IMG/VR virus record: IMGVR_UViG_3300050821_002957
Span: 248,001 to 312,000 of that record
Length of the DNA stretch: 64,000 nt
Strand: one strand, 5' to 3'
The notes beneath the pieces were generated by a model. That model had not been told where the DNA came from. It did no database searches and saw only the letters and a program-made list of their open reading frames with translations. This document shows positions 15,793 to 63,872 of the stretch, piece after piece. The position numbers were made by a program, and so were the translations under genes. Each line of letters begins with the position of its first letter. Positions within the stretch are counted from its first letter, which is position 1.

Positions 15793-16836
15793 TTAGTCGT
15801 CAGACGGAGGAGGCCGAAGCTCCCCAGTCTGTTGTCCTGCACCTTCTTCTTCGGCGTCTGCTTCTTCGGTCATAAAACCAGAAGCCTTCTTGCCATATCC
15901 ACTTTCAAACGTCTTCGGTTTCTCGGACATCTTTCTGAGACGTTTAAGAACAATCGGATAGGACTGATCAAGACAGAAAGATGCAGCAACCAATTCACGC
16001 AAGTGGGCAATGCTGAAATCCTGTGTGTCCTTTGTCCAACGAGCCAAAGTTTCTTCGTTAAGACCTTCGGTCGTGCTGCCGTCTTCATTCTTTGTAGTCG
16101 TTGCAAATTTCAAGTAAGCCTTGCGAGCAACTGCCGAGGGCATTCCAACATAAATGCGTTCGTCAAAACGTGACGGTCTATTGACGATACGTGCGCCCAG
16201 TTTATCGGGGTAGTTTGTGGTAGCCAAGTATACTACATTGGCGATTTGGTTTTCACCGTCCAGCATCGAAAGGATGGCGTGCTCACCATGCTTGTCAATG
16301 ATTTCGTCGATATCTTCCAAAACCACAATGATCGGCCTGTCTGGTTCCATCCCACGTACTCTCTGGAGCATATGAGACAGTAAATCTGGATGACCGCACA
16401 GGAGAACAATACCATTCAAGCTGATCAATTCTTTCATGAGCAGGTTGATTGTTACGCTCTTTCCTGAACCCGGAGGACCCCACAGCAACACACCACGTTT
16501 ATAGACCAGACCAAATTGATTGTAACGTTCCTGACTCTGCCAAAATTTCTTCATACCAGCAAGAACTTTTACGTTAGCAGTTTCGGGAAGCTCAACAATG
16601 TTGTCTGAGATGACGGTCTGTAACTGAAGGTACGGACCCATGTCGTCTTGATCAATTTTGTAAACACCTGGATGAAGATGCGGAATGGTTTTTGCAGCCG
16701 CACGAAACTTGCCGTTCGTGCCGACTTGCCATTGCGAATAGTCCATATCAGTGTCGGTTTTCTGACTGATTTTTGACATTCTTTTTGCTATCGATGGTAC
16801 GGGACTTTCGTCCTCGTCTTCGTCGTGATCATACAT
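15793..16836 (-). CDS. AAA+ ATPase
   Basis: YKRGVLLWGPPGSGKS, VVLEDID, ATTNY, NRPSRFD. Confidence 0.9.
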   Translation of the reverse strand: MYDHDEDEDESPVPSIAKRMSKISQKTDTDMDYSQWQVGTNGKFRAAAKTIPHLHPGVYKIDQDDMGPYLQLQTVISDNIVELPETANVKVLAGMKKFWQSQERYNQFGLVYKRGVLLWGPPGSGKSVTINLLMKELISLNGIVLLCGHPDLLSHMLQRVRGMEPDRPIIVVLEDIDEIIDKHGEHAILSMLDGENQIANVVYLATTNYPDKLGARIVNRPSRFDERIYVGMPSAVARKAYLKFATTTKNEDGSTTEGLNEETLARWTKDTQDFSIAHLRELVAASFCLDQSYPIVLKRLRKMSEKPKTFESGYGKKASGFMTEEADAEEEGAGQQTGELRPPPSDD

Positions 16837-42865: not shown

Positions 42866-42953
42866 TGGCTGGAGGAGCAGGACTCGAACCTGCATATGAG
42901 CTTTCGCTACGACACATTAACAGTGTGCTGCCTTACCGTTAGGCGACCCTCCA
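42866..42953 (-). tRNA. tRNA with GTT (Asn) anticodon on a class II long-variable-arm body
   Basis: TGGAGGG/TCCTCCA acceptor, G73-CCA, loop CTGTTAA, 18-nt variable region with AGC-GAAA-GCT hairpin. Confidence 0.88.
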
Positions 42954-43711: not shown

Positions 43712-44647
43712 TTACACCACCAAATCTTTGGGCAAGCGTTCAGTCCGTGCAATCTCTTCTGCGGTCGGTTTGATCACATTGCCGACGATTCCACCGAAGA
43801 TTGCTCCGACCGTATCTGTGTCGCCACCGACCTCAATGAAGCTGTTGATGCAGGATGCGAACGAAAGACCTTTTTCCAAAGCCTGATGTGCCTGCCATAA
43901 TGCAAAAGGAACTGTATCGACTGCCGTTACTTCTTTGCCGTTTCCAACCTTGCCAATTATTCCCCAATTGGTTTCGTTAAATGCACCCTCACTGGCGACC
44001 CATTCGATGCGATCACGAAGTTCCCCTGATGGTGTGTATTTGATGATGTTTAACCAGAAGTCTTCCTCAGGTCTTCCATAAGTTACGTTTGCTGCGGCTA
44101 TGGCGACCGCTATCGAACCGGCAATAGCATCGACGTGATAATGGGTCACTTCGGCAGATAGACGTGCTTCTTGCGCTACAAGGCCATAGTCAGGTCCAAA
44201 GTGTGCGCCAATGACAGCATCACGCATTGCCGATCCGTTGCCTTTTGAGCCGATGCCCGGTCCCCACCAATTCTTGCTATGCTCAAGCCAATTGTCGGAG
44301 TCATAGCTATAGGTCGTCAACAAACCACGAGTGCCACGCCCATAACCACGCTGAGGATCAACATGAAAATTACGAGCTAATTCCTGAGCGAGTTCGAGTT
44401 GATTGATCGTATTGAATCGGTACAAAGTTCTAACGACACCAATACCGACATGTGTGTCGTCTGTCCAGGGATAGAGAATGTCAATTTTTGTGATCCCTCG
44501 TTCAGTGGCGACATTCCCAGCCTTGTAATATTCAGCCGGAAGAATCTTCATCTGATTTTCGCCTGCTGCATCGCCTACCGACAAGGCAAGAAGCGAAAGA
44601 TAAGTTTCTTTCTTTTTGTACTGCATCGGAGCAAGACAGGGTGTCAT
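43712..44647 (-). CDS. ADP-ribosylglycohydrolase family protein
   Basis: VGDAAG, WTDDT, RGYG, GNGSAMR, VTH, GGDTDT. Confidence 0.92.
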   Translation of the reverse strand: MTPCLAPMQYKKKETYLSLLALSVGDAAGENQMKILPAEYYKAGNVATERGITKIDILYPWTDDTHVGIGVVRTLYRFNTINQLELAQELARNFHVDPQRGYGRGTRGLLTTYSYDSDNWLEHSKNWWGPGIGSKGNGSAMRDAVIGAHFGPDYGLVAQEARLSAEVTHYHVDAIAGSIAVAIAAANVTYGRPEEDFWLNIIKYTPSGELRDRIEWVASEGAFNETNWGIIGKVGNGKEVTAVDTVPFALWQAHQALEKGLSFASCINSFIEVGGDTDTVGAIFGGIVGNVIKPTAEEIARTERLPKDLVV

Positions 44648-45382: not shown

Positions 45383-45458
45383 TGGCCGCTGGTTCCAGTT
45401 ACGCTCTGGACTCTTCTGTTCTTCAGACAGACGCTTTCACTAGATTAGCTTACCAGCG
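45383..45458 (-). tRNA. tRNA-Phe(GAA), atypical T-loop AGCGTAA and D-loop AG
   Basis: CGCTGGT/ACCAGCG acceptor, TCTGT-CTGAAGA-ACAGA anticodon arm, TCCAG/CTGGA T stem, GCCA end. Confidence 0.85.
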
Positions 45459-45515: not shown

Positions 45516-45605
45516 CCGGTGGTAAATCGCCAATATGTAAAAGTGCGTGTCATCGTAATTCTATTTATACCACGATCATTGCTGTCTGTCAACAATGAAA
45601 TTCTG

Positions 45606-45684: not shown

Positions 45685-45990
45685 AAATAACAAGGCCACT
45701 CGGAAGTAGCCAAGATCCCTTGGTACACATGGTAACAGGGTCTACTATTCGTGAATGATTTCGCCTATCACTCGTTCTGGCATTAGCTTCTCAGGCGGGA
45801 CACTTCCATTCATAAGGTCAACCATGCGCTGTGCTTGAGCTAGAGTGTGAAAGGTTCCATACGGTGTGACATGTGCTCCACCGTCGCCAGAACCTACTTC
45901 AACCAAATCATACTTCGTTTCCGTCTTCGGCCAAATCTCGTACCTAATTTTCTGTTCGGTCGATGACTTGTTGACGAATTCCATAAATGT

Positions 45991-46521
45991 GTGTCGGTGT
46001 TAAGGCACACCGAGCAGGCCGCAAGATTTTGTTACTGATCAATACCTGCTAAGAACCAGGATGTTTAAGAACTTATCCTTGAGAAAGCTCCGTTGTAGGC
46101 GACACGGCTTCCCTGAGAGTCAGAGTTACTTCAGCTACTCCTGATGGTATGGTGACTCAGCTACCCCGACTTTTTAGTGATCGGCTCCATTCCGGTATTC
46201 GATTCGGCAACGACAGATTCCGACTCTGCAACGTTCTGCTTCTTTTCGATGAGAAGCAAAAATCATAAAAACTCAAAATGACCAGAGGACCCTCAGCAGT
46301 GAGCGCAGATCCCACGTTCGCATACAAGCGTCAATGACAAGTTTTATCCAACGAGCCATTGTCTTGTACGTTGGCTCACCGTCGAGTGCGCTATCCAGTT
46401 CGACACACTCACCTGCGGTTCTAATGACTTTCGTCTCCCGCTGGCCCTATCATCGCCTCACACTTCCGTGTGTTTCAACATCCTGGTCATCTCAAGGGCG
46501 ACAGCCTTGCGGCCACGACAC
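45991..46521 (-). ncRNA. Large pseudoknotted ncRNA, ROOL-like (~530 nt)
   Basis: Long-range pairs 45991-96:46516-21, 46017-25:46506-14, 46055-65:46477-87 and 46077-84:46490-97 (last two cross); lies in a tRNA cluster; family name is an inference. Confidence 0.65.
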
Positions 46522-46768
46522 CCCACCAGCTTTTTTACTGTGTACTGATCACAGGGAGAGCTAGAACGACTTTCGCCGCCCCACACCTACCGCCACTGGT
46601 CGAGACTTCTACATGCGACCAGCCATGTCGCTAAAAGGGGCACTACGAGTAGATGCCCTCCACCACGTTGTTCTTTTACGTCCAACAACGAAACGACTTA
46701 GACCCATAACTCTGACCGGAAATCAGAACTATGATCCACACTCCCCGGTGGAAGCCGGGAAGACTTTG

Positions 46769-46855
46769 AATGTGAACTAATAATTGACAAGGGATTATAG
46801 CCCCGAAGGACCATTTCACCATTTGAAAGATAACCCTCATCTTCCGGCTCACATC
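46769..46855 (-). ncRNA. Y-RNA-like RNA 2
   Basis: GAUGUGAGC-C-GGAAGAUGAGGGUUAUCUUUC...AUUAGUUCACAUU. Confidence 0.68.
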
Positions 46856-46971: not shown

Positions 46972-46996
46972 GACGGAGCATAGTGCGCTCTACGTC
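46972..46996 (-). repeat. Conserved bulged hairpin, copy 1 of 3 (others 58131..58157, 58628..58654)
   Basis: (GA)ACG-UM-GAGCG-CASUR-UGCUC-CGU. Confidence 0.8.
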
Positions 46997-47001
46997 GGAA
47001 T

Positions 47002-47078
47002 TGGTGGATACACATGGGAATTGAACCCATAACCTTCTCGGTGCAAGCGAGTTGCTCTCCCAATTGAGCTAGTGACCC
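47002..47078 (-). tRNA. tRNA-Ala(TGC) with a 1-nt bulge in the acceptor stem
   Basis: GGGTCAC / GTG-T-ATCC, G3.U70, loop CTTGCAC, ACCA. Confidence 0.9.
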
Positions 47079-47085
47079 ATAACTT

Positions 47086-47162
47086 TGTACCTCGAACAAA
47101 TAAGTATCAGAGGGCTTGTCATTAGGAAAGATAACCCTCTAAATCCGGCTCGAAGCACTACA
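47086..47162 (-). ncRNA. Y-RNA-like RNA 3
   Basis: GCUUCGAGC-C-GGAUUUAGAGGGUUAUCUUUC...AUUUGUUCGAGGU. Confidence 0.72.
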
Positions 47163-47169
47163 AAACTTT

Positions 47170-47248
47170 TGGTGGATCGCCAGGGATTTGAACCCTGCTG
47201 TTATCCTCGGTGCAAGCGAGGCAAACACCCCAAGCATTTCCGCAACCC
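47170..47248 (-). tRNA. tRNA-Ala(TGC), non-canonical 6-bp D stem
   Basis: GGGTTGC/GCGATCC with G3.U70; AAATGC-TTGGG-GTGTTT D arm; CCTCG-CTTGCAC-CGAGG. Confidence 0.85.
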
Positions 47249-47256
47249 ACATTTAA

Positions 47257-47466
47257 ATAGCACGAACAAATAGCGGTAGAAGACTGATAGGAGACTGCAT
47301 TTAACGCACCCTCGGATTGGATACCGATCAGATACGCTTCAAACTCCCCTCCTCAAAGTTACGGGCGTCTTTTACTACACGTACAACGAACTGCTTTGTG
47401 CCCACCAAATACTGCCGGTGAACTTTGTCATGGTTAGGTAACCTTCCAACCAGCGGCTCGTGCTAT
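47257..47466 (-). ncRNA. Y-RNA-like RNA 4 (long internal domain)
   Basis: AUAGCACGAGC-C-GC...GAAGGUUACC...AUUUGUUCGUGCUAU. Confidence 0.7.
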
Positions 47467-47468
47467 GT

Positions 47469-47530
47469 CGAAACAGAACGAAACAGAACGAAACAGAACG
47501 AAACAGTGCTCAACGATGCGAAACAGTGCG
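47469..47530. repeat. 10-bp tandem repeat CGAAACAGAA x3 plus two CGAAACAGTG variants
   Basis: Read directly from sequence. Confidence 0.9.
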
Positions 47531-48220
47531 TTAGGTCAAAGATCGTATTCTTTATCTATACACGCTACAGTTTGCTTTCAATAGCGCCTTTGACTCTTTC
47601 AGTCTAACATCCTTAGTATGGGATGTCAAGTGCCACGAACATAATAATTTCATCTTCGTCTTTTTTGCGACGAGCAGCAGCTTCTTTCTCAGTCAACACC
47701 AGAGGAGACGGATTGCCTTCGACTTTGATATTCACTGATAAACCTTGCTGGAGCCATCCAGATACTTCATCGGGCGGCGTCTCGACAAATGCCTGATCAC
47801 ACGCCTTCTGAATTTCGACATTGCGTATTGCAGCAAGCGGTTTGCCGGATGGCGTCATGATGTCTACGTTACAAAGAAGCATGTTTATCTACCAACTGCT
47901 ACGGCTGAAATTCCGATAACACTTTCAATATTGTACAACAGACGAGCGGCTTCTGACAATTCTGAGCCGGTGCGATCCAGTGTAGCATGGACGCCGGTCG
48001 GATCAGAATCAGCTTTTGAGTCATCGTCTTCTCCGGTGTATTGAAGAACATCTAACACCGTTTTTAAGCGACGAGCCAACATCCTAGCCAATTGCAAATT
48101 TGCATCCGAAGAAGATTGAATTGTCGTTGGTTCGTGGTTCTTTTCTGCTGGACCGTCAACAACTAATCCAAACTTCTCTAATAAAACTTTGTTTCCTTTC
48201 TTTCCTGTATTCATAATTTT

Positions 48221-48296
48221 TGGTTGGCCCAGATGGAATCGAACCATCAACCTCAGAATTATCAGTTCTGCGCTCTACCAATTGAGCTATGGGCCA
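48221..48296 (-). tRNA. tRNA-Ile(GAT)
   Basis: TGGCCCA/TGGGCCA, CAGAA-CTGATAA-TTCTG, ACCA. Confidence 0.95.
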
Positions 48297-48381
48297 ACAT
48301 ACTCAGAAGTAGTTATACTAGCGGCGAATCATTAGTGGAGGCCCAATAATCCGCCGCCAGTTTTACAGAATCAACCAAAAA

Positions 48382-50175
48382 CTACTCTTCGGTCTCTTCT
48401 GCGATCCCAGCACTTGAACCACGAATAAAATCCGTAACCAATGCTGGAACATTCGAGTCGAACCCAACGATGTCCAAAGAATACGGGTCCTTCGGATCTG
48501 CGATGGTAAATTGCGTAGAAACCATTCCCATCACGATCAGGCGCACATCATCCTGCCCACGATGCTTACGATACTGCTTGAGAGCCTGCGACGGTTGCAT
48601 TTGTCCAGCCCAAGTCTCATTATCCGTGATCACCATGAAAGCGTCTGCGTCGATGCCAGCCTTTTGAGCGTGAAGCATCGGTGCAGCACAATCGGTTCCA
48701 CCAGCCGACATGCGAGAGGTCTTTGCCAACGCAGTCTTCAGAGTGTCCTTTGCGGTGATGCCAATTTCCTGCATTCCCGTAGAAAATGCATAGATAGCGT
48801 AATTCGGTTCCGTGCGAGCCACAACCATCGCCATTGCTGCGCCTGCTTGTGCTGCCGTGATTCCGGTGCCTTGGATGATGCTGGACGCCCACGACATAGA
48901 ACCAGAAACGTCCATGCCAATGTACGTAGCCTTACCAGTCGGAATTGCGTTTGCGAATGCCAAGTAGAACGTGTTCTCTAAAGCGTCCACAATGGTCGGT
49001 ACAACGGTCCAGGTCGCATCGCTGCGCTGACCGTGGCCTTGGCCGTAGGTGCCTTGTGCCAACAATACCTGGAGCGGGTGAATCTTGCTCTTCTTGACGT
49101 AGGCTTCATCGTTCAAACGAGACACGACGAGCTTCGATGCTGCCGACAGCGGCTTCAAGAGACCAATCTTCGACATGGTTCCAAGATTACGAACCATTGC
49201 AGTTACCGGCATCTTCTGAAGCAGAGCTTCCCAGACTTCCGGTTGCGTCTTAAACTGCGTCGGAATCATTTCGTGAGTCAATCCACCGTCGATGATGCAC
49301 TTTACGATAGTGCTCGTATCCGTCGCCTTCTTTGCGGTTTCATAGGCGGTGATCAACTTCGGTGCGTTCGATCCGGTCAACAAATCATAAGCGTTCTGAT
49401 AGCGAGCACGCTGATTCTGAATTTCCGCAGAAGTCAGATCAGTCGTGCGATGGCTGTTGCCCTGCCACTTCTTGACAGAACGAGTCCAGTTCTGAGCAGC
49501 TTCGTTCAAGGCATCGAGACCACCGAAACGACCCCAAGCCAGCAAAGCACTCTTCATCGGATCAGTCGCCTTGACGTGTGCGAGGCTGACGAGATCACGA
49601 GTGGACCAGCCATCACGCTGTTGATACTTCGCCAACTGATAAGCCAGCGAATCTTCCGTGCGTTCGGTGTACCAGTTGCCGATTGCAGTCTTTACACCAC
49701 GACCGTATCCACGCATGGAATCGAGGTACTCGTTGAAGTGGAACATGTGAGTACCGATACGTGCAACCTTGCTCAATTGCGACAGAGCATAAGCAGCAGT
49801 TTCAGCCGAACCAAAATTCGGTGTTGCGGCAACTGCCAGGGCAAACAATGCCGGATCGTTCTTCGGAGCACGGCCTGCTTGCGAAATGTTGACGATCATA
49901 TCGACCGTGCGCTTTCCATCCAACTGCAAGCACGCACGAACGTTCGCTGCGTTGTCTACAGTCATCTTCTTGGCAGATGCATAGTACGTCGGCGCATCGC
50001 TACCGAGAATCAAAAATCGTTCGAGCATCTGGAAGGGAGTGATGGTGAAGGTGTATCCACCAGCGTTGTTCTGCTTCATCTCTGCTTCCCGGCCCGGAAT
50101 TGCCTGCGACTGTGATGTCTTCTTGCCGCTTAATACCGTTGCGTAATTGCTCTTTGCTGATCCTGCCTTTGCCAT
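48382..50175 (-). CDS. rsr: Ro60/Rsr TROVE-domain RNA-binding protein
   Basis: NNAGGY, RFLILGS, GRAPKNDPALFALA, KYQQRDGWS, RNLG.M, IHP, vWA DVSGSM, TDNETW, GFD; AGGAGA SD before ATG 50175. Confidence 0.95.
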   Translation of the reverse strand: MAKAGSAKSNYATVLSGKKTSQSQAIPGREAEMKQNNAGGYTFTITPFQMLERFLILGSDAPTYYASAKKMTVDNAANVRACLQLDGKRTVDMIVNISQAGRAPKNDPALFALAVAATPNFGSAETAAYALSQLSKVARIGTHMFHFNEYLDSMRGYGRGVKTAIGNWYTERTEDSLAYQLAKYQQRDGWSTRDLVSLAHVKATDPMKSALLAWGRFGGLDALNEAAQNWTRSVKKWQGNSHRTTDLTSAEIQNQRARYQNAYDLLTGSNAPKLITAYETAKKATDTSTIVKCIIDGGLTHEMIPTQFKTQPEVWEALLQKMPVTAMVRNLGTMSKIGLLKPLSAASKLVVSRLNDEAYVKKSKIHPLQVLLAQGTYGQGHGQRSDATWTVVPTIVDALENTFYLAFANAIPTGKATYIGMDVSGSMSWASSIIQGTGITAAQAGAAMAMVVARTEPNYAIYAFSTGMQEIGITAKDTLKTALAKTSRMSAGGTDCAAPMLHAQKAGIDADAFMVITDNETWAGQMQPSQALKQYRKHRGQDDVRLIVMGMVSTQFTIADPKDPYSLDIVGFDSNVPALVTDFIRGSSAGIAEETEE

Positions 50176-50250
50176 ATCATTATCTCCTATGATACCTAAT
50201 TTTTTCGACTTCACCAGAATAACACATGCCTGATTGTTGTCAAGCATGTA

Positions 50251-50589
50251 TTATCCAATATCACCTGCTCCATCTTTGTGACGTAAGATCACTTCTTCAG
50301 CGATCATGTACGCCAAGACTGCAAGCTGTTCGTAATACTTCATGGTCATATCGATGATTTCGTCGATCTGACTACGTGTTGCGATGATACGAACCGGAAT
50401 CATTCGTTCCTCAAACAGCGTCTCTTTAAAAATCCACTGTCCTTTCGCAACCGGCATGATCGTCAAACCACCAGAAATTGTACGCACCTTTTCATCCCAG
50501 ATTTTGTGGAATCTGGTTCTGATCGGACGACCGTCATTCCGCATTGTCGGAACGAGAATCTCCCACATCGATTTTTTGGTGCTATTCAC
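50251..50589 (-). CDS. Hypothetical phage protein upstream of rsr
   Basis: WEILVPT..GGLTI...KGQW..ERMIPVRI; leaderless promoter with palindrome. Confidence 0.6.
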   Translation of the reverse strand: MNSTKKSMWEILVPTMRNDGRPIRTRFHKIWDEKVRTISGGLTIMPVAKGQWIFKETLFEERMIPVRIIATRSQIDEIIDMTMKYYEQLAVLAYMIAEEVILRHKDGAGDIG

Positions 50590-51097
50590 ACACCCACCAT
50601 AACATGTAGATGTGTCTTTGTCAAACTACCAATTCAAATTGTTCGAGGTCCCCGGTCACATAGCTGCCCGTTTCAAGTTGAGCCGTCCAGTGATCAGGAT
50701 GAAGTACGTATGATTCGGAAGTTGGATTCCAAATTTTATACCGCTCAGTTACCACGCCTGCGATTATATAGGCACACTGAAAATTACAGCCAGGACAACG
50801 TTCGGTTTTGGTTCCATCCCAGCCGCCATGATAGAGGATCTTGACGCCGGGTTTCATTTGGTCGAGGATCATGAAATACTCACACTATCGGCTAACACCA
50901 TCAATTCTCATGAGTTTGCCTCTTAATGTCCGGTGCTATCAGTTCTATGAGCTTGTCCAGTTGAGGCCGAATGGTGTCTAGGTCAACTTTCGTGTAACCC
51001 TTTTGCATCATTGCGTCTACCATTTCATATGCCGTAGTTGTGATCTCGTACAATTCTTCTGTCAGATCGCTTTGGTAGACGTACTCGCCCCAATCTC

Positions 51098-52207
51098 TCA
51101 TCTGATTTCCCCACCAATCTCTGCAACCAGTTTACGAATTGCATCGCCCTCAGGACCGGCCCAACGGCGCTTCAGGTCTTCGTCAACATCTTTGGACTTA
51201 TTACGCCAGTCGTCAATCGCTAATTTTTGTTTTTTAAGAAACGGATTGCCCTTTTTGATTTGTTCCGAAAGACCATCCCAGTCAATCAGGCCACCGCCGT
51301 TGATGTCAAAACTTACTTCAATTGCAATTTTGAAGCGACCATCGGTGTCATCAAGGTATTCTGTGTCGATAGCATCTTTTAGAGATAAGTGTGTCGGAAG
51401 AGAAATGTATCCAAACCGTTCTTCACGAACAATGATGCCTTCGTCAATTCGACTAATATTGAAATACTGGATTTTCCAGCTTGTATCGTCGCCCCAATAA
51501 CAACCAGCGACAAATGCGTGCTTCGGAGGAAGAATTACACTCCCATAAGCATAGTCTTTTTTTGGTCCCCAGACCCATCGATATTCATCACGTTCGTATG
51601 AAGTTCCAGCGTCGTTTATTTTGCCGGTGTACGCCCGGACTCTGGTTCCGTCTTCGTAATAGATGATTTTCCGACCAGACATTTTTGAACTAATGTCACC
51701 GATACGAGCACCTGGAGGAAATTTTTCGAGTAAGTTCTTCCAATCATTCTCCGAATAATCGTCTTCGCTAACATGCTGCCGAATCGTAGGAATGTACAAC
51801 TCGACTGGACAAAACCCATCACTGTCTTTTTCTTCCCCGCCGATGTCTTTGATGCCGACACCAGGAGTGATTTCTAAGACACGAGTGCCGGTATAGTGTG
51901 GAGAGTAGAGAGCATAATACTTGTCGCCTTTCCGAGTGACCGCAAAGGTTTCAGAGAAAGCATGATAGTTGCGTATGTACTCACCGATCAGATAAGGATC
52001 TTGTCCTTGTGCGTCCTGTTGAAAGACCCCGATCTTCTGATAAGACCAACAGCCTTTACCTTTGTCGATTTGGTCGATTACTTTAGCCGTAAAGGATGGA
52101 TATTCTTTTAAATACCCATCCTCATCTTGCGGAGCCACAGGCGTAGGAATCTGAACGGTGACCGAAGGGATCACCGTGTTCGATTTTCTATTGAAAGACC
52201 AGAACAT
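51098..52207 (-). CDS. Hypothetical protein
   Basis: 369-aa ORF directly downstream of clpP. Confidence 0.6.
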   Translation of the reverse strand: MFWSFNRKSNTVIPSVTVQIPTPVAPQDEDGYLKEYPSFTAKVIDQIDKGKGCWSYQKIGVFQQDAQGQDPYLIGEYIRNYHAFSETFAVTRKGDKYYALYSPHYTGTRVLEITPGVGIKDIGGEEKDSDGFCPVELYIPTIRQHVSEDDYSENDWKNLLEKFPPGARIGDISSKMSGRKIIYYEDGTRVRAYTGKINDAGTSYERDEYRWVWGPKKDYAYGSVILPPKHAFVAGCYWGDDTSWKIQYFNISRIDEGIIVREERFGYISLPTHLSLKDAIDTEYLDDTDGRFKIAIEVSFDINGGGLIDWDGLSEQIKKGNPFLKKQKLAIDDWRNKSKDVDEDLKRRWAGPEGDAIRKLVAEIGGEIR

Positions 52208-52209
52208 TA

Positions 52210-52809
52210 CTACTCTTCTCTCGGACGAGGCTTGACGATCTTGTCGATGATGCCGTATGCCAGTGCTTCTTCGGCATCCATGATGTAGTCACGCTCAAGA
52301 TCCTTCTCGATGCGCTCAATCGGCTGACTTGTCAAATCAACCATCATGTTGACCAGACGCTTCTTGGTCTTTAAAATATGTTCGGCGTAGATCGCAATGT
52401 CTGTAGCCTGTCCACCAAGACCGTACATCGACGGCTGGTGAATCATGACCTCAGCACCAGGAAGAGCAAACCGCTTGCCCTTGGTGCCACACATCAAGAT
52501 TGATGCACCCATCGAAGCTGCACGACCGACACAGGTAGTCTTGATATCGACACCGACGAGGTTCATGGTATCAATGATTGCCATGCCTGCGGAGATCGAT
52601 CCACCCGGCGAATTGATGTAAATCTGAATGTCTTTCTCAGGATTTTCGGTCGAGAGATAAAGTAACTGTGCGACGACAGCGTTCGCAACATAGTCATCAA
52701 TCGGTGTTCCCAAGAAAATGATATTGTCTTTCAACAGACGTGAGTAAATATCATACGCACGTTCACCCTTGTGATCCGATTCGATTACGATTGGAGTAAG
52801 CATTGACAT
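52210..52809 (-). CDS. clpP: ATP-dependent Clp protease proteolytic subunit
   Basis: [23 protein letters not shown] (Ser), MIHQP (His), ERD (Asp). Confidence 0.97.
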
Positions 52810-53451
52810 GATGGTTTTTATTGTTCCTTTTTGAAGGGGCGACCGTCAAGCCGCCCGTATGAAGCCGAGCGTGACAAAAAACACGGCGAAGAGCGCAGAG
52901 GCCCATCCGTAATTCTCGCCTTCAGCTAAAGCAACAACGACACAGATGGCGACGAAAATTCCGAGCCATACACCGACGAAGGCTAGACTGCCAAAAGCAA
53001 CCACGCCTCCCAAAGTCAAAAGTTCTATCATTTTATTTTCCCTTTCTCTACTTCAAATTCAGATCCTTACGAATCTTGTCAATCTTGTTATTGGTAACTC
53101 GATTGTACTCGGACATGATGCGTTTCATAATCGTCCTGAACGATATCTGCACGATCAAAAAAAACATCGCTAACGGCCAGCAAATGACATCATAAGCAAT
53201 TTCCCCACGAAAATCAATTGCTTTCGGTGGTACAGCTTTTAGACGTATGTTGTTTTTTACATAATTCCGCCATTCATAGATGAGAAACTCTGGGATATTT
53301 TCACCCCGAATCCTATGAAACAACAAGAATCGTGCTCGTTCTGCCTCATAGAATCCAATCTCATCATCGACGTACAGCTTCCACCTGATGAACCCCCATA
53401 AAAAACCCACGGCTGCATAACCAAACACAGCCAGGACATAGTAAAAAATTT

Positions 53452-53988
53452 TCATTGCGGCTCGAAGAGAATGACGTGTATGTTATCAAGCTCCTGTAGT
53501 CTATCATAAACCAATGCCTTTACGTCAACAAAATTCAGACCACCATTCGCACAACCTAACGCAGGCATCGCAAGAGACTTGATGAGTAAACCTGACTTCA
53601 GCCGGTCCTTCAAATCATCGAGGCCAGCGGCGATCCATTCTAGTTTTGATCCATTTCTCCAATCGTCTTTCGTCGGAAAATTGATAATGAATTCGTTGAT
53701 CTGAGATGTTTGATAGTGTTCACATCCGCAGGCACACCACAACCCCTGATCATGGGCGTCAAAATCACATTCACAAAGACAGTCAGGGATTTCATGCCAA
53801 ACCCAAACCTTACCAGTCTGAATGTACTTGCGAGCGCACAATTTCCTGTATTCGACGTACATGTCAGGATAACGCTGCTTGAACTGGAGTGCGATACCTT
53901 TGCCCATCACGCCGACACAATTCACAGTGTTGACGATAGCTTGTGCGCCGCAGTCGAAGAGGTTACCAGTCGTTCGTGTTTCGATCAT
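53452..53988 (-). CDS. Macrodomain protein (DarG-like) with Cys-rich insertion
   Basis: GNLF, AIVNTVNCVGVMGKGIALQFK, IINFPTK, PALGC.NGGL. Confidence 0.9.
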   Translation of the reverse strand: MIETRTTGNLFDCGAQAIVNTVNCVGVMGKGIALQFKQRYPDMYVEYRKLCARKYIQTGKVWVWHEIPDCLCECDFDAHDQGLWCACGCEHYQTSQINEFIINFPTKDDWRNGSKLEWIAAGLDDLKDRLKSGLLIKSLAMPALGCANGGLNFVDVKALVYDRLQELDNIHVILFEPQ

Positions 53989-55111
53989 TTTCTTTTCAGT
54001 TTCTTTTCTAGCCTACGAATTTCTTTTCGGGTTTCCGTTTCTTTAGCTTGGTTTCTCAAGTCTTCGAGATACTCTTCGTCGGTCGTATAGGTGTTGTAGC
54101 CACAATCCAGACATGTTTCTGTGTACTGCTGAATTCGATTATGTGGACAATCAAGAAAACTGATCATTCACCTAACTCCACTAGATCGTAAAGAAGCTGG
54201 TTCAACTGATTGACCGGCATCGTCTGACCAAGAATATTATCAACATTCACACCAAAGCCTACGGCCCATTGCCAACGAGCACCGGATGGAGCTTTCGAGA
54301 CAATCACACGAAATTTCTTTTCGTCACGAACACTCTCAATAATGTGAAGGTCAATTTCAGAATTCATTTTTATCTCGATAGGTGACAACAGGCCGAATGC
54401 CGCCCAATTCGACATTCAACTTCACGCCTTCCGGTTGATCACGTGGCCGCTGACATAGCCGACCGAAATGATTTTATCAACATTGATGTTATTGCGCCGC
54501 AGGTATTCTTGGAGCGCATCAATCAATTGTTCTTGTGACAGACGAATTTCTGACTGGATTGTAATGGGGTTCTTTTGGGGATACATCATGCCTCCTCTTC
54601 AGTGAGCTTGCGAAAATTTTCTTCATGATAACCGAAGAGCACTCGACCATCTTTTAAAGCAATGGCTACGTGACCCGGCATCTGTTCGATCTCGCCAAGC
54701 ATGAGTACAGTGTCGCCATTCTTGAAAGGATAGTCAAAGCCTTCAGGAAGGGCGTTGACCTCGCAAAGATATGGACGTTTGAGTGGCTTGTGCCTATAAT
54801 ATTTTTCGTTCATTCTAAACTTCCTATGAGTTCGAGGAACAATGGCAAGCTGTCTTCACACTCGACAATGTATCCGTCATCGTCCAATTTTCCTTTGAGG
54901 ATACCAGCTTTGATCAGAGCCGCCTCAGGATCAGATTTCCATCCGCTGTTTCCGAACGGACGTTTCCCAGAGAAGCCTTCTTCTTTGATCATCAGTTGGA
55001 TCAACAATTCTTTCATCCATTCGAGGATCGTCACTTCTCGTTGCAGATCATCAGAATGAAAAAGAAGATACCCCGCTTGCTTCAGCACTTCCGATGTGTA
55101 CTTTACGGTCT

Positions 55112-55759
55112 TCATACTTTGGCATCGCTCTCGCCGGTCAGGATTGCAGAGATGAAATGAGTACGGGGTGGCAAATCCGCAATTTGAATGTCTTCCTTTT
55201 CCCGGCCACCTGTCTCTGGATTGGTAATGAAGTCCCGCTGTGAAATCGTGGTCCAGCGGTCTACAAAACATGTTTCGATATCCAACGTATTTTCGACGCA
55301 ATAATCACGGCACAAAATAACGATGGTATCAATAACACCTGGATGAATGTTTGCAGCGTAAAGAAATTGATCCGACAAACTTCCCAAATGTTTGCCAAGC
55401 AACAGAAGGATGAGTTCAGATTTTGATGGATTGCCTGGAACGTTAGTAGGAAGACGATACGCAGGGAGTGCTTTTAAATCCCGAAAAATTTCTGTGAATG
55501 TGGCGATCCGACCAACCCGAGCACAGAATTCTGCAAGACCGATGAGCACGTCACCAATTTCTTTTTTCTTTTCGGCCTGCCAGTACTCCCAGGTTCCCCG
55601 AATATTCCCGGATTGCTTCACTTCTACACGTTGAAGTTCGCCAAATTCTTCTCCGATGGCAAGAAGATCATGAGCATCGGTGCCGGTTGGATAATTACGA
55701 AGATGCCATTGATGCAATTCGTTTACGAGGTCGCTAATGACAATTTTGGTGATGTCCAT
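55112..55759 (-). CDS. MazG-like NTP pyrophosphohydrolase
   Basis: IGEEFGEL...KKEIGDVLI. Confidence 0.65.
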   Translation of the reverse strand: MDITKIVISDLVNELHQWHLRNYPTGTDAHDLLAIGEEFGELQRVEVKQSGNIRGTWEYWQAEKKKEIGDVLIGLAEFCARVGRIATFTEIFRDLKALPAYRLPTNVPGNPSKSELILLLLGKHLGSLSDQFLYAANIHPGVIDTIVILCRDYCVENTLDIETCFVDRWTTISQRDFITNPETGGREKEDIQIADLPPRTHFISAILTGESDAKV

Positions 55760-55785
55760 ACACCCTCATTCTACACCAAAAATAG

Positions 55786-56010
55786 AAAAGCGCAAGGTCT
55801 ATTAAACCCTGCGCTTCTGGTGCATTGCGTGTTCCGGTGGTATCGTCACATGCACGTTAGACGTTTCTACGTGTTCGGGTCTTTCTCCCGACTAGCCTTT
55901 TCCCTGCACCTAGTGACCGTCTCCTAATCCCAGAATATTCTCAAGCGATCAGTAATTAGCTGCGTAGCTCTACCTTTTTCCAGATACGTCCGTATGACGG
56001 CTGCTTGCTC
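55786..56010 (-). ncRNA. Candidate structured RNA ending in a terminator
   Basis: ~200-nt intergenic stretch with several hairpins; AAGCGCA/UGCGCUU terminator. Confidence 0.35.
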
Positions 56011-56761
56011 AACTACCGATTCAGTGTAGCAGGTTCTTCAGATTTCTTTTCAAATTTCCGCTTTACCTTGCTGGTAGAATCAACGTAGATGTTGAGATTC
56101 TTTACGTCCCCAACATATTTTGAAACCGCCTGAACCCATTCCCGAGTCGGCGTGGCTCTCAACGTATGAGTTCCCTTCTCGGTGCCCTTACGAATTTCTT
56201 CCCGAAGGGTCTCAGGAATCATCTGCCAATGCTTCGGGCACAATAATGCTTTGCCCCGAGTGTTTTCGTCGCAAATACGAACGATACATGCCATGCTAAA
56301 AATAGCTCCTATGTGATACTGCTACTGAAATTTGTCGAACTACTACATGTCGCCAAATTACTTACAAACGTCGAACCACCGTTCAAATTTTCATTGACGC
56401 TCAGACAACTGCCACCGATGGTATAACTACCGTTGTCAGTCGCCGTCGTCGTTCCTGTGTACGTAATCTGAGTTCCATACGGCCATGTGTTAGGTGACGT
56501 ATATGGATAATACGGATAGTAGTTTGGGTAATGATTCTTCGTGCAAGGGTTTTCGATGTAGCGAATCGTTTCCGGCCCAGGAATGAACCTGATGGTTTCC
56601 TTGTCCGATTCTACTTCGACAACTCGAATTGTTTCTTTTGGCTCCGGGACCGTGATCGTCACCTTTTTGCCGTCTTCTGATACTTTTACCTGCGCCTCGC
56701 CAGGGATTTCAATTTCTATTCCATTTAAGTTTAACGTCATGTTGATCTCCTGTCAAGTTCC

Positions 56762-57385
56762 TTACTTATTCAATTCTGCTTCATTGACATCACAGGCTAA
56801 GTTGCTGGTCATATAGTTTCCACTGAGAGCCGATGACGTATAGGTGCTACGGACAGCGCTCATTGCATTCATCGCCATTCCAGTGTTGGCTACGGTATAG
56901 TTGACGGCATTCGATACGCCAATATCCTTCGCCGCCGCCCATGCATCTTGATTGGCACCGAAGTAGACGAAGCCCCATTTGTTTTCATCCTGACGAATTT
57001 TGATCAACGTCTGGATTGCTGCACGCTTCCATTCTCTAGAAGCATTTTCACGTCCGTCTGTCATGATTGTAACCATGACATCAGTCTCACCCCTGGTAGC
57101 CGTAGAAATAGTTGCACCAATGGCATCGAACAATGCTGTCCCGCCGTCTGGGGAATATGTGTTTTTGTTAAGTTTTTGAACTTGTGCGAGTGGAACATCG
57201 GTGAATACCTTTTCCACTTTTTCTGAGAACTTGGTGAGAGATACAAGGTAGGTAACTTCACCTGCCTTCTCTTCTTTCGCCATCATTTGTAACTGTTCAT
57301 TGAATCCATCGATTACGACTTGTTGCTGATTGAGCATCGAGCCGGATTCGTCAAGGATAAACTTCTGCTTAATTGTCTTAGCCAT
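56762..57385 (-). CDS. vWA domain protein
   Basis: FILDESGSM MIDAS, GGTALFDAIG, TDGRENAS, W.F.Y.GAN. Confidence 0.9.
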   Translation of the reverse strand: MAKTIKQKFILDESGSMLNQQQVVIDGFNEQLQMMAKEEKAGEVTYLVSLTKFSEKVEKVFTDVPLAQVQKLNKNTYSPDGGTALFDAIGATISTATRGETDVMVTIMTDGRENASREWKRAAIQTLIKIRQDENKWGFVYFGANQDAWAAAKDIGVSNAVNYTVANTGMAMNAMSAVRSTYTSSALSGNYMTSNLACDVNEAELNK

Positions 57386-58164
57386 TCTGTAGTGGCCTCC
57401 TGTATTGAATTGCAAAGTGACGTACTGCATTACCCGCACTTCTGTTTTATATAGACAGGAGATTTTAGACAAAAAGGTGGGATGAAAAAGAAAAAGCGCA
57501 GGGTCCGGGAATGACCATTGCGCCTCTTCTCGACGTTTTCTCCTTGTGCTACCACAGACGCACCGATTAAAGTGCCGGGGCGACGATCCCCAAAGGAGTT
57601 TGGCTTGCGCCTTAAACACGTCCAGAGATTCCCGCTCCAAACGCTTCCACTTCGGTGTAGGTCCGCAGTGGTCAGTTACGCCCTCTCGTCAAGCGAGTGC
57701 GCTCTATTTTTATCGATGTCCGAGACAGGAATTTAACCTGCATACTCCGAAGTTGGATGCTATTCTACGGTGCGGACATGCCCACGATCCGTTTCAGCTA
57801 CTTTCGGACAAACTTTATACACGGTGGTGCATCTTATACTTCTTGGATCGAAACCCAAGCGGGGACGGAGTATGCCGCATCGAGAGCATTGAACGGTTGC
57901 AGGACGTTACTCCCTTGGCCTGTATTCTCGACTTCCTTCTGGTCCGTAAGCCCGACTACCAGAAACTCACCAAAACCTACTTGTCGGCGGGAGGGATTTT
58001 TCACTTGCTAAATCCAGTCCGCTTATCCGGTGGGACCTATCCTTTTCAGGGCCGACGAGAAATCCGGGGCGCTTTCGTTAAGCTATCGTTCATGACCGAC
58101 CTGGAGTGCCAGGATCTTCCCCGTATCGAAGAACGGAGCACACTGCGCTCGACGTTCAAACTAA

Positions 58165-58358
58165 TTGGAAGAGAGGACTTCACTTATAGTTGTTCCAACA
58201 CTCCGACGTTGCAACATCGAAGCCAAGCTGACTTTCCAGCTTCCGTAGTTGACTATCTAGAATTCGTCTAACTCTGCGGAGTCGAACCGCTCTCGCCCCT
58301 CAACGGGGCTGTGCTTCCGTTACACTAAGTGAGCAACTACGTGTCTTCTCTCTTCCAA
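58165..58358 (-). ncRNA. ~195-nt RNA with long terminal stem enclosing a tRNA-like domain
   Basis: UUGGAAGAGAG/CUCUCUUCCAA; inner GUGU-AACGGAA-GCAC D arm, GCCCC-GUUGA-GGGGC, GCGG-UUCGACU-CCGC T arm. Confidence 0.65.
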
Positions 58359-58661
58359 AAATCCACGGTCACTGCTTGCCTATGGAACCCTCATCACATT
58401 CGACATCTCTGCGATTTGAGGTAGCACTTTCCAGGTGCCCTTTATACCCTTACCGACATGCAGCGACCACTAAAAATTCCGGCTGGACTGCGCTGAACGA
58501 GGCCGGTTCGCTATTTCCTGTTCAACTAGATGATGGTAGCTTACCACCATCACGTCGGCTCTTACGCCGCAAGATTGTGCGCTATTACACTTCACATGGT
58601 GTTTAGTCACAATCCAGCCTAATCGACGAACGGAGCATACTGCGCTCTACGTTCAAAATCC

Positions 58662-58730
58662 GTAGTGTCCTGCCATTAGACGACCGGAACGTTACGTTCC
58701 GAGAGGGACTCGAACCCCCATTTCCACTAT
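58662..58730 (-). ncRNA. Circularly permuted tRNA-like module 2 (closed acceptor stem)
   Basis: GGGGG-UUCGAGU-CCCUC; UCGGAACG-UAA-CGUUCCGG; UC-GUCUAAUGGCAGGAC. Confidence 0.8.
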
Positions 58731-58731
58731 C

Positions 58732-58784
58732 GGTGCCGTCCTGCCATTAGACGATTTTCAGAGGAGTCGAACCCCATTTGCACC
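58732..58784 (-). ncRNA. Minimal permuted T-arm/D-arm module 3 (no acceptor stem)
   Basis: GGUGC..GGGG-UUCGACU-CCUC-UGAAAA-UCGUCUAAUGGCAGGAC-GGCACC. Confidence 0.7.
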
Positions 58785-62445: not shown

Positions 62446-62748
62446 TTATTCCTCGTCGTTAATATCTAGCCAATCGGGAGCTTCCCAGGTTCGGTGAATA
62501 ACTCTGACGTAGATTACACCTTCTTCTTCGTCAAGATTCCATTCAAGATCATCGCCAACTTCTATGTTCAATTCACGAACTAATCCATCTGGCAGTGTCA
62601 TCATTCCGTTCGGTTGTATGACACAGGCATATGACCTATTACCAAATCCAGAGTTCACCCAGACACCTAAAATGGGTGGTTCATCATTATCTTCAGTCGG
62701 CTCTTCGTCAAAGTCTTCCGGTTCTAGCTCTGCGTAATCTTCAGCCAT
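62446..62748 (-). CDS. AbrB/MazE-like DNA-binding protein
   Basis: IQPNG.MTLP..LVRELNIEVGDDLEW. Confidence 0.7.
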   Translation of the reverse strand: MAEDYAELEPEDFDEEPTEDNDEPPILGVWVNSGFGNRSYACVIQPNGMMTLPDGLVRELNIEVGDDLEWNLDEEEGVIYVRVIHRTWEAPDWLDINDEE

Positions 62749-63872
62749 TTTCTTCCTACCCGAATCACTGACATTTCTGGCAACGGTTCTTTGAGTCTTG
62801 GATCGATAACTACACTACCATTTACATTTACGGCTCCGCTCTTCACCAGACGACTGCCCTCTGAGACCGAAGATGCCAAACCCATCAGCACCAAGACTCG
62901 ATCCAGGCGTGTATTGACCGAATGAAAAACCGGAATTCTTACAACTGGAATATCGACCGGCGCTTCACGATCTGAAAATCTCTTTGTCCATTCAATTTCA
63001 GCGGTGTCTGCTTTTGGTTCGTCATGTAACCAATGAACAATTCGCCATGCCAAATATTTCTTAGATTGAAATGGTTGAGGATGCCAGCCACATTTATTTG
63101 GAAACAGAACCTCTTGCCATTGGCGCATTACATCATCAGCAATCGACATAACTTTGCTGAACATTTCAAATGGTTCATCCAGCAAACCAATGTGATTACC
63201 GAACGACTTGGACATCTTTCGACCGTCCGTACCAAACAACAAAGGAACCGTCGCAATAACCTGAGGTTTCTCACCACGATCATGCATGTACATCCGGCCC
63301 ATCAGCATGTTGTAAAATTGATCGTTGCCGCCAAGTTCAATATCTACACCTTCTCTGAAAGAGTCATATGCCTGAAGCATGGGGTATAACATCTCATGCA
63401 TAAAGACCGGAGTGTTTGTTACCTTGCGTTCTTTAAAATCGTCACGGCCACCGATTTGACTGAGGGTGAAATGGGACATGAGACGAATTACATCTTGCAT
63501 CTTCATCTCGTCAAACCATTCGGCATTCTTTTTGACGACGGTTTTGGTTCGATCCAAAATTTTGAAAGCCTGTGTCATATAGCTCCAGGCGTTCGTATTG
63601 ATTTCATCGTCAGAAAGCGCAGGCCGAAGCTGATTGCGCCCGGTCGGATCACCAATCGATGCTGTGGTGTTGCCGACGATCATCACAATGGTGTGCCCAG
63701 CATCCTGAAATTCACGCATCTTTTTCAACAGCACAGCATGACCAAGATGTAGGTCTGGTGCTGTGGGATCGAATCCGGCTTTCACACGTAACGGATGACC
63801 TGACGCAATAAGAGCATCAAACTCCTTTTCGTCGAGGAGTTGCGTAAACCCGGATTTGAGTGATTGTTGCAC
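62724..63872 (-). CDS. tyrS: Tyrosyl-tRNA synthetase
   Basis: GFDPTAPDLHLGH, GDPTGR, YP.LQAYD, GG.DQ, KMSKS, C-terminal S4 domain. Confidence 0.97.
   Translation of the reverse strand: MQQSLKSGFTQLLDEKEFDALIASGHPLRVKAGFDPTAPDLHLGHAVLLKKMREFQDAGHTIVMIVGNTTASIGDPTGRNQLRPALSDDEINTNAWSYMTQAFKILDRTKTVVKKNAEWFDEMKMQDVIRLMSHFTLSQIGGRDDFKERKVTNTPVFMHEMLYPMLQAYDSFREGVDIELGGNDQFYNMLMGRMYMHDRGEKPQVIATVPLLFGTDGRKMSKSFGNHIGLLDEPFEMFSKVMSIADDVMRQWQEVLFPNKCGWHPQPFQSKKYLAWRIVHWLHDEPKADTAEIEWTKRFSDREAPVDIPVVRIPVFHSVNTRLDRVLVLMGLASSVSEGSRLVKSGAVNVNGSVVIDPRLKEPLPEMSVIRVGRKWLKITQS

Follow-up and report, generated by a model that had tools for sequence, protein, structure and literature searches.

The question raised by this stretch of a giant phage genome is what recognizes a small bulged hairpin that is found three times among tRNA-like RNAs, in two loci with a phage Ro60 gene standing between them. 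The stretch (the window, 64 kb, all of which was analysed) is part of IMGVR_UViG_3300050821_002957, a 405,631-bp viral contig, and the source sequence recurs with 100% identity in one contig of the JGI metagenomes. The original prediction was that the hairpin abuts a tRNA-like RNA each time, and that it is a protein-binding or processing tag linking the two RNA loci. Ro60 targeting in phages is barely explored, and the element is compact (~27-40 nucleotides, nt), appears strongly selected and is located beside a full-length Ro60 gene, in an uncultivated 405-kb phage.

Copies, fold and conservation of the hairpin

The core of the hairpin was searched as the pattern ACGTMGAGCGCASTRTGCTCCGT in the window and in 100 dinucleotide-preserving shuffles. 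There are three exact matches, all on the minus strand (46973-46995, 58133-58155 and 58630-58652), and none in the shuffles, also when up to three mismatches are allowed; with an expected count of 0, a chance origin of the motif is rejected. The consensus of the three window copies is ACG-U(A/C)-GAGCG-CA(G/C)U(A/G)-UGCUC-CGU, and since the outer stem reaches past the core (copy 1 has GACG/CGUC there, copies 2 and 3 have GAACG/CGUUC) the wider coordinates given originally are right. Folded in isolation, every copy takes the predicted bulged pentaloop shape, with an outer stem of 4-5 bp, a 2-nt bulge on the 5' strand, a 5-bp inner stem closed by a G.U pair, and a pentaloop, at free energies of -9.4 to -12.7 kcal/mol and z scores of about -2. 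A wider search for the motif, proposed together with the original prediction, was run as a core-pattern scan of the viral collection and found a fourth copy in the same genome, outside the window (L172). The four copies are:

46972-46996, minus strand: hairpin copy 1, GACG-UA-GAGCG-CACUA-UGCUC-CGUC, followed by CAUUCGUCUAG and then by the YrlA-like unit A described below
58131-58157, minus strand: hairpin copy 2, GAACG-UC-GAGCG-CAGUG-UGCUC-CGUUC, followed by UUCGAUACGG and a degenerate T-arm-like hairpin at 58113-58100
58628-58654, minus strand: hairpin copy 3, GAACG-UA-GAGCG-CAGUA-UGCUC-CGUUC, followed by GUCGAUUAGG
L172 3342-3364, minus strand: hairpin copy 4, UACCG-UA-GAGCG-CAGUA-UGCUC-CGGU, between an open reading frame (ORF) for an HNH-type endonuclease and a tRNA(CAU)

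Related Ro60 loci were read to 10 kb on either side of Ro60. A protein search gave a closer clade with Ro60 proteins 57-77% identical, several of them on contigs of 370-400 kb, and ten loci were compared; the contigs P0004 (Ro60 74% identical) and P0005 (73%) are not among these. One locus, L123, was added by the core-pattern scan of the metagenome collection. Homologous hairpins are present in seven related contigs, with Ro60 64-77% identical, at the following positions:

L082 12793 and L083 13208: directly after the second tRNA-Ala, like copy 1
L083 199: a further homologue, accompanied by a truncated copy at the edge of the L083 locus
L123 11668: ortholog of copy 3, with the outer stem AAGCG/CGCUU
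L179 119: ortholog of copy 2, with the outer stem GGUG/CACC
L179 13187, L180 4275 and L085 13106: more divergent homologues
L086 ~14290: the most divergent homologue, found by eye

Copy 2 has decayed in L123, where the 5' half alone is left. In an ungapped alignment of eight sequences 93.8% of the cells are paired and four outer-stem pairs are changed on both sides, and one outer-stem pair is AU in four sequences, GC in three and CG in one. The covariation score or the percentage paired was reached by none of 500 shuffles, and registers slid by 1-3 columns give 32-55% paired. Among 13 instances, in an alignment fitted to a model, 91.7% of the cells are paired and 14 carry double changes. No variation is seen in the last G-C pair of the outer stem, in the first base of the bulge (U), in the GAGC/GCUC stem or in most of the loop; the bulge on the 5' strand has 2 nt, rarely 3, and all 12 full-length instances have the same G11 and bulge U. 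The fixed G11, bulge U, inner stem and loop fit recognition of a specific surface and not of a generic stem. Within the one genome the four paralogs differ in their outer stems and share the same core, indicating that the lower stem need only pair while the upper part would be read sequence-specifically.

On this comparison the hairpin is a real, selected RNA element. Conservation in related phages, on which the original prediction had been staked, is found together with compensatory changes, and the pattern of conservation and covariation is the one expected of a protein-binding or processing tag, a function which we infer.

The hairpin is, as far as these sequence searches reach, specific to a clade of ~370-405-kb phages. 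By string search no hairpin was found in 79 other IMG/VR Ro60 loci (Ro60 at most 46% identical), and a covariance-model search of the same 79 loci gave nothing but one spurious match in high-GC coding DNA. No match was found in Sinorhizobium phage Phosso, in mycobacteriophage Rizal or, by blastn, in 50,697 GenBank phages, and a general feature of phage Ro60 loci is therefore rejected. In the JGI metagenomes the true matches are the source phage and L123 only, more than one copy per contig being found in the source phage alone; a further metagenome match (L146, high GC, with a pairing outer stem) was judged to be chance. The core-pattern scan of 185,579 species genomes returned 46 single, unrelated matches. 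Rfam holds no family for the hairpin at gathering score or at E up to 5. A mimic of a CRISPR repeat (a solitary repeat unit or RNA anti-CRISPR) was rejected, as no arrays were found in the 185,579 genomes or in the JGI metagenomes.

The Ro60 gene, the tRNA-like RNAs and their operons

Nearly all genes of the window and all eight tRNAs called by ARAGORN are, like the hairpins, on the minus strand. The features needed here are:

48382-50247, minus strand: Ro60/Rsr ortholog of 621 amino acids with a TROVE domain (PF05731, 2.9e-40) and a Ro60-type vWA domain (PF25045, 2.2e-57); Deinococcus radiodurans Rsr, 2nvo, 4.7e-105
47006-47078, minus strand: tRNA-Ala(UGC), with 6 nt between its CCA end and hairpin 1 downstream, the synteny being kept in L082, L083 and L084
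46865-46952, minus strand: YrlA-like unit A, with T-arm at 46952-46936 (CCGGG-UUCGAGU-CCCGG), a long closed acceptor-like stem-loop, D-arm at 46890-46873 and the tail GCAGCCGUAUUU
58660-58733, minus strand: YrlA-like unit C, with closing stem CCG(A)UAGU/ACUACGG, T-arm at 58719-58703, acceptor hairpin at 58700-58686 and D-arm at 58684-67
58738-58775, minus strand: partial tRNA-like module immediately upstream of unit C, a T-arm and then a D-arm without acceptor hairpin
58268-58340, minus strand: tRNA-like gene located between hairpins 3 and 2, its parts in normal order and its 'anticodon' loop of 5 nt, kept in L083, L123, L179 and L087
57641-59285, minus strand: RNA locus 2, ~1.65 kb long, in which minus-strand ORFs do not exceed 56 amino acids and no terminator is predicted; it shares conserved blocks with L083 and L123
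47601-47629, minus strand: σ70-like promoter at the head of locus 1, TTGACA-17-TG-TAGACT, followed by GAAAGAG, kept in L083 and L085
59286-59314, minus strand: σ70-like promoter at the head of locus 2, TTGACA-17-TG-TATCCT; L123 has TTGACA-17-TAGACT at the same place

The tRNA mimics of the original prediction are, judged by the order of their arms, Y-RNA modules of the YrlA type (permuted T-arm, closed acceptor hairpin, D-arm) next to a Ro60 gene. The Rfam YrlA model (RF02553) aligns to unit C at 58667-58720 (model positions 30-81) in the order T-arm, closed acceptor stem, D-arm; units A and C share the permuted domain and have the T-loop UUCGAGU and a GG-containing D-loop in common. The D-arm UCGUCUAAUGG(C/U)AGGAC occurs three times (58754, 58683 and 46889), and this YrlA-like D-arm is identical to that of the tRNA-Gln of the same genome (L172 ~7974). 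The alignment to unit C scores 17.8 bits, below the gathering score of 69 bits, and the hairpin lies outside the model. Neither the window nor 13 Ro60 loci of related and other phages gave a YrlA match at gathering level, and canonical YrlA RNAs, sought in seven Ro60 loci for a 5' consensus, were not found. The threshold is a weak criterion and the model a narrow one, since a YrlA-like match upstream of Ro in mycobacteriophage Rizal (model positions 23-87), likewise below gathering, reaches just 36.1 bits; Rizal belongs to a phage group in which YrlA is reported by Chen et al. (PMC4201824). A long terminal stem formed by the 5' and 3' ends was not found on the tRNA-like units: their closing stems, read by eye, have only 4-7 bp, that of unit A (GCUG/CAGC) being short and inferred by eye, and minimum-free-energy folds of whole units gave no long terminal stem, with z near 0 and thus uninformative.

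According to Chen et al. 2014 (PMC4201824), Y RNAs share the strand of Ro60 and lie no more than about 4 kb from it, usually several per genome. Copy 1 and unit A are 1.39 kb downstream of the Ro60 stop codon, inside this distance, and copies 2 and 3 of locus 2 lie 7.9-8.4 kb upstream of Ro60, all on the Ro60 strand. Copy 1 stands 6 nt 3' of the CCA end of tRNA-Ala and 20 nt 5' of the T-arm of unit A, and the core of copy 3 stands 14 nt 3' of the D-arm of unit C, 7 nt past its closing stem, so for these two the claim that each copy abuts a tRNA-like RNA holds well; for copy 2, ~110 nt 3' of the tRNA-like gene and 17 nt 5' of the degenerate T-arm-like hairpin, it holds loosely. The tRNA-like gene at 58268-58340 is, from its predicted fold, a further kind of tRNA mimic in locus 2: its 'anticodon' arm is a 5-bp stem with a 5-nt loop, and among its counterparts (L083 545-615, L123 12040-12112, L179 1-20 and L087 1760-1830) the L123 copy is called by ARAGORN as a tRNA-??? 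with a 4-base anticodon.

Locus 1 and locus 2 each have the look of an independent untranslated operon headed by a promoter with an extended -10 region, and the transcripts and their bounds are predicted ones. Copies 1 and 3 are located ~600 nt and copy 2 ~1100 nt from the promoter, so that the hairpins fall inside predicted transcription units, as the original prediction needed them to. Intrinsic terminator prediction gave none in locus 2, none at copy 1 and none at any hairpin, and a role of the hairpin as intrinsic terminator (a GC-rich stem with a U-tract) is rejected. The hairpin was also rejected as coding sequence, locus 2 having no minus-strand ORF above the length given and the orthologous gap in L083 no called gene; a 241-amino-acid plus-strand ORF across copy 2 has no Pfam match. 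A σ70 promoter inside the motif was rejected by inspection, as TTGAAC and TATGCT are spaced by 11 nt only.

The leader of locus 1 holds a boxA-like GATCTTTGAC(C/A) at 47544-47534 (minus strand), ~60 nt past the promoter, kept at L083 ~12465 and L085 ~12228. The L085 version is GATCTTTGACAACAAA, which we take to resemble the rrn boxA antitermination sequence, and such an element would suit a long untranslated operon. In the same leader, at 47469-47508 (plus coordinates), there are 3-4 tandem copies of a 10-nt unit, CUGUUUCGUU (minus strand), not seen in L083.

What the hairpin may bind

The reading we favour, tentatively and with something less than an even chance, is that the hairpin is a loop-closed version of the Y-RNA terminal stem, that is, a portable Ro60-docking module. 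A stem-bulge-stem with the bulge on the 5' strand is the feature which Ro60 recognizes in animal, bacterial and Thermus phage phiLo Y RNAs, and a minimal stem-bulge-stem hairpin is bound by phiLo Ro60 with a dissociation constant of 16.6 nM, each base of CGAA being worth a 3-4-fold change in affinity (PMC12135203). The Ro60 motif is GGUCCGA in animals and GNCGAAN0-1G in bacteria, with contacts mainly to one strand (PMC4201824). The order of parts in YrlA is Ro60 site, V, T, AS, D (Chen et al. 2014, PMC4201824). In the phage loci a helix with a 5'-strand bulge and conserved bases around it is found, and in unit A, at L083 199 and in L086 (there with a short cassette between hairpin and unit) the order is hairpin, NCGAW, closing-stem strand, T-arm, acceptor stem and D-arm; this same order of parts as in Y RNAs favours the docking module, as do the nearby Ro60 gene, the YrlA-like mimics with no long terminal stem of their own, and the selection pattern of the hairpin. 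In Rizal a 10-bp terminal stem strand runs directly into GCCGAGAG, and at the same place L083 199 has UACGAAGAG and copy 3 has GUCGAUUAG. CGAW is found within 12 nt 3' of the hairpin in seven of 14 instances by hand count, against about 7% expected, examples of NCGAW(U) being UUCGAU, GUCGAU, ACGAUUUU, AUCGAAUUU and UACGAAG (L083 199), with three near-misses.

Canonical Y RNAs offer Ro60 a terminal stem made from their paired 5' and 3' ends, with a bulge on the 5' strand, that runs into a contact motif of CGAA type. The megaphage Y-like RNAs would instead be embedded in long polycistronic transcripts of tRNAs and non-coding RNAs, where the Ro60 surface would be supplied by a self-contained, loop-closed stem-bulge-stem together with single-stranded NCGAW, and a stem closed by a loop rather than by the 3' end of the RNA would be a natural solution for modules inside such transcripts. 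Ro60 would then be docked beside a neighbouring structured RNA, either 5' or 3' of it, be it a YrlA-like mimic, a tRNA precursor or another conserved structured RNA. A wider proposal, about which we are rather doubtful, is that the hairpin with or without NCGAW is a circularly permuted 'Ro tag' grafted by megaphages onto unrelated structured RNAs, be they large unclassified non-coding RNAs, tRNA mimics or a tRNA precursor, to recruit the phage Ro60, which would bring Ro60, and thereby host exonucleases or chaperoning, to chosen RNAs of a polycistronic transcript.

A tRNA-like RNA as partner of Ro60 has been described from bacteria and mycobacteriophages (PMC4201824) and from some jumbo phages (Iyer et al. 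2021, PMC7824862), and Ro60 with a Y RNA also from Thermus phage phiLo (PMC12135203). The association in phages is thus known; neither Rfam nor the Ro60/Y-RNA literature cited here describes the hairpin module or the modular way in which it is used. The loci share with the YrlA/Yrn1 module (PMC4201824) that they are adjacent to Ro60, on the same strand, in several copies and beside a permuted T/acceptor/D domain, and that a helix with a 5'-strand bulge runs into a segment of CGA(A/U) type; the Y RNAs of D. radiodurans are moreover co-transcribed with tRNAs (PMC4201824), which the hairpin loci resemble. The canonical site is an open stem of 5' and 3' ends with GNCGAAN0-1G on the 5' strand. The phage element, by contrast, is a hairpin of 10 bp closed by a loop; it has RNCGUNG on the 5' strand, NCGAW follows its 3' strand, and it is also seen far from Ro60 and where a tRNA-like partner is lacking. 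The phiLo RNAs Yrl1 and Yrl2 (PMC12135203) are likewise phage-encoded, near a phage Ro60, and simple stem-bulge-stem hairpins, but by their description, the basis of this comparison, they have CGAA inside a large internal bulge and no tRNA-like domain. The phiLo Ro60 is reported as highly divergent, 16.6-17.7% identical to the D. radiodurans and Xenopus proteins (PMC12135203).

Several observations weigh against Ro60 docking. The 5' strand of the hairpin reads RNCGU(A/C/U)G, and neither GGUCCGA nor an exact GNCGAAN0-1G is found there in any copy. CGAW is absent in L082, at L083 13208 and in L123 and degenerate in copy 1, L085 and L180. No hairpin was detected in the Ro60-bearing relatives L087, L088 and L178, the copy-1 site of L178 holding a different, longer stem-loop, and copy 4 is located 8 nt upstream of its tRNA(CAU) in a distant tRNA cluster with no Ro60 nearby. 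The link between hairpin and tRNA mimic is real yet loose: the hairpin is 3' and not 5' of unit C, L123 keeps hairpin 3 but not the two tRNA-like modules standing ahead of window copy 3, L082 and L083 13208 have the hairpin without a mimic and before a different structured stretch of ~340 nt, and L087 has a mimic without the hairpin. As a device linking the two loci of the window the hairpin was therefore drawn too narrowly in the original prediction, given the remote copy 4, and relatives often lack the adjacent mimic. The tRNA(CAU) beside copy 4 has a 1-72 mismatch and an Rfam tRNA score of 39.6 bits, and was missed by ARAGORN.

These same observations bear on a second explanation, the chief competitor of the first, which we regard as possible rather than probable, namely that the hairpin and its U-rich flanks punctuate the transcripts, signalling endonucleolytic separation of tRNAs and non-coding RNAs by an enzyme of RNase E type, without Ro60; as a terminal stem-loop the hairpin may also shield the released neighbours from exonucleases. 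The loose coupling to the mimics and to the Ro60 locus suits such a general role, and the hairpin parts unlike RNAs: tRNA-Ala from a mimic at copy 1, a mimic from another RNA at copy 3, the HNH ORF from the tRNA 8 nt downstream at copy 4, and in L083 and L085 it stands ahead of the ~340-nt structured stretch. The 3' flank usually reads ...GAUUU or GAAUU (copy 4, L086, L179 twice, L180, L085 and L178) and the upstream flank WUUYR, with WUU conserved in the alignment. RNase E prefers R-N-cut-W-U-U, a preference that comes from mapping in Salmonella and may not be that of the host. Both flanks (GAUUU/GAAUU and WUU) fit this low-information preference; the motif holds about 6 bits only and overlaps the conservation of CGAW, so that the NCGAW(U) flank resembles both the CGAA contact motif of Ro60 and an RNase E site. 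RNase E sites in bacterial tRNA operons are similar in that U-rich single-stranded segments stand beside a stem-loop in tRNA spacers, but they lack a conserved hairpin sequence, whereas the phage element has an invariant inner stem and loop and is rare among the tRNA spacers of its genome. A generic stem would have no need of an inner stem, G.U closing pair, bulge U and loop that stay the same in relatives with 64-100% Ro60 identity, nor of an identical core among four paralogs whose outer stems differ. The genome has many tRNA genes and only about four copies of the hairpin, so that most of its tRNA spacers lack one.

The hairpin could also be an operator for another protein, such as a phage RNA-binding regulator (e.g. 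the small S1/IF1-like OB-fold protein) or an antitermination factor acting in the manner of N and boxB, by which RNA polymerase would be carried through the long untranslated operons, and this we consider unlikely. A 5-bp stem with a pentaloop and an invariant loop and bulge recalls the lambda and P22 boxB and the MS2 and PP7 operators; MS2 and PP7 operators have a bulged base on the 5' strand, and phage operator hairpins of these kinds (boxB, MS2/PP7) have a short stem, a loop of 4-6 nt, a sequence-specific loop and bulge and a lower stem that covaries freely. Being long and untranslated, the operons would be exposed to Rho, and locus 2 has no predicted intrinsic terminator; a boxA-like GATCTTTGAC(AA) is conserved in the leader of locus 1, and a 70-amino-acid gene of PF01176 (eIF-1a/S1-like) recurs in all related loci. 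Lambda-type boxB/nut sites have a GNRNA pentaloop with boxA a few nt upstream, and the phage hairpin shows neither: its loop CAGUA (also CACUA and CAGUG) is not GNRNA, the flank directly upstream holds no boxA, and its context is not a translational one. The hairpins are moreover about 600 and 1100 nt from the promoters, beyond typical nut sites, no candidate partner is tied to them, and copy 4 lies in the middle of a tRNA cluster. A K-turn was rejected by inspection, the pairs after the bulge being Watson-Crick G-C and A-U and not sheared G.A.

The weakest explanation, highly improbable in our view, is that the hairpin substitutes for the D-arm in a degenerate tRNA-like cloverleaf, or is a functionless tRNA-derived fossil spread by duplication. 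Bases 5' of the hairpin can pair past the T-arm (AUUCCGA/UCGGAGU at unit A and UUUGA/UCAAA at L083 199), which would put it in the position of a D-arm, but such acceptor pairing would compete with the covarying outer stem, copies 3 and 4 as well as the hairpins in L082, at L083 13208, in L123 and in L085 have no T-arm or acceptor partner, and no ARAGORN or Rfam tRNA call (E up to 5) extends across any hairpin; a tRNA of normal order with the hairpin as D-arm is rejected on the same grounds. The 5' half GUAGAGCGCAG matches the tRNA-Ile(GAU) of the window exactly over 11 nt (48268-48278 against 58640-58650, both minus strand; two matches in the window, 0 expected), spanning there the end of the D-loop, the 3' strand of the D-stem and the start of the anticodon stem, and this hints at a tRNA-derived origin of the hairpin. 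The mimics, and perhaps the hairpin too, look tRNA-derived in sequence; a fossil would not hold 91.7% pairing with compensatory changes.

If the hairpin binds Ro60, the docking surface of Y RNAs can exist as a stand-alone hairpin within operons, and the search for Y RNAs, which now relies on a stem of 5' and 3' ends and on a narrow Rfam model, would be widened. If the wider tagging proposal is true, Y-RNA function would be a modular tagging system and not a dedicated small RNA, while a processing signal would define the punctuation of tRNA and non-coding RNA operons in giant phages.

Other RNAs and genes of the region

In either case, both loci hold several conserved and unclassified structured RNAs that are worth describing. 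Downstream of unit A, the non-coding stretch 45985-46790 (minus strand) is strongly structured, with many GNRA-capped helices and a 716-nt fold at z = -4.06. Blocks of it are 77-87% identical to L083 13640-14360, with GAAA/GCAA loop swaps seen side by side. It has no Rfam match at E up to 5 and may be an unclassified large phage non-coding RNA.

A cassette GAGCCG-N-GG(G)TTAYC, followed 40-190 nt further on by ATTTGTTCR, is located just upstream of tRNA genes or other RNAs, in the window at 47459-47437, 47151-47130, 46850-46829 and ~45690 (all minus strand). Its first part has three minus-strand copies in locus 1, with 0 expected, and a fourth match outside it at 27807 (plus strand). The GAGCCG cassette recurs in all related loci (L083, L085, L086, L172, L178 and L179) and could be a leader or processing element. 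At 45561-45571 (minus strand) there is GGTATAAATAG, which presumably resembles the T4-type late promoter TATAAATA; it is kept at L083 ~14462 and is located upstream of a long inverted repeat and a tRNA at 45386-45458 (minus strand) that was found by Rfam alone (39.7 bits) and not by ARAGORN. The tRNA-Asn(GUU) at 42866-42953 (minus strand) has 88 nt, an unusual length that suggests an insert.

The closest Ro60 of a cultured phage is 43% identical and encoded by the 469-kb Sinorhizobium phage Phosso (PV764938.1 290301-291965, L227), where it stands among tail genes with no tRNA or hairpin nearby. In the related 375-kb phage of L086 an abiF RNA motif (RF03085, 45.2 bits, gathering 37) is found at 16773-16814 (plus strand), just upstream of a tRNA-Phe, and no counterpart was detected in the window.

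The genes around the RNA loci, all on the minus strand, encode an ADP-ribosylglycohydrolase (43712-44647), a ClpP protease (52210-52809), a Macro-domain protein (53452-53988) and a tyrosyl-tRNA synthetase (62724-63872), and related loci additionally hold NADAR and an IF1/S1-like OB-fold protein. The region looks like an island of RNA repair and counter-defence.

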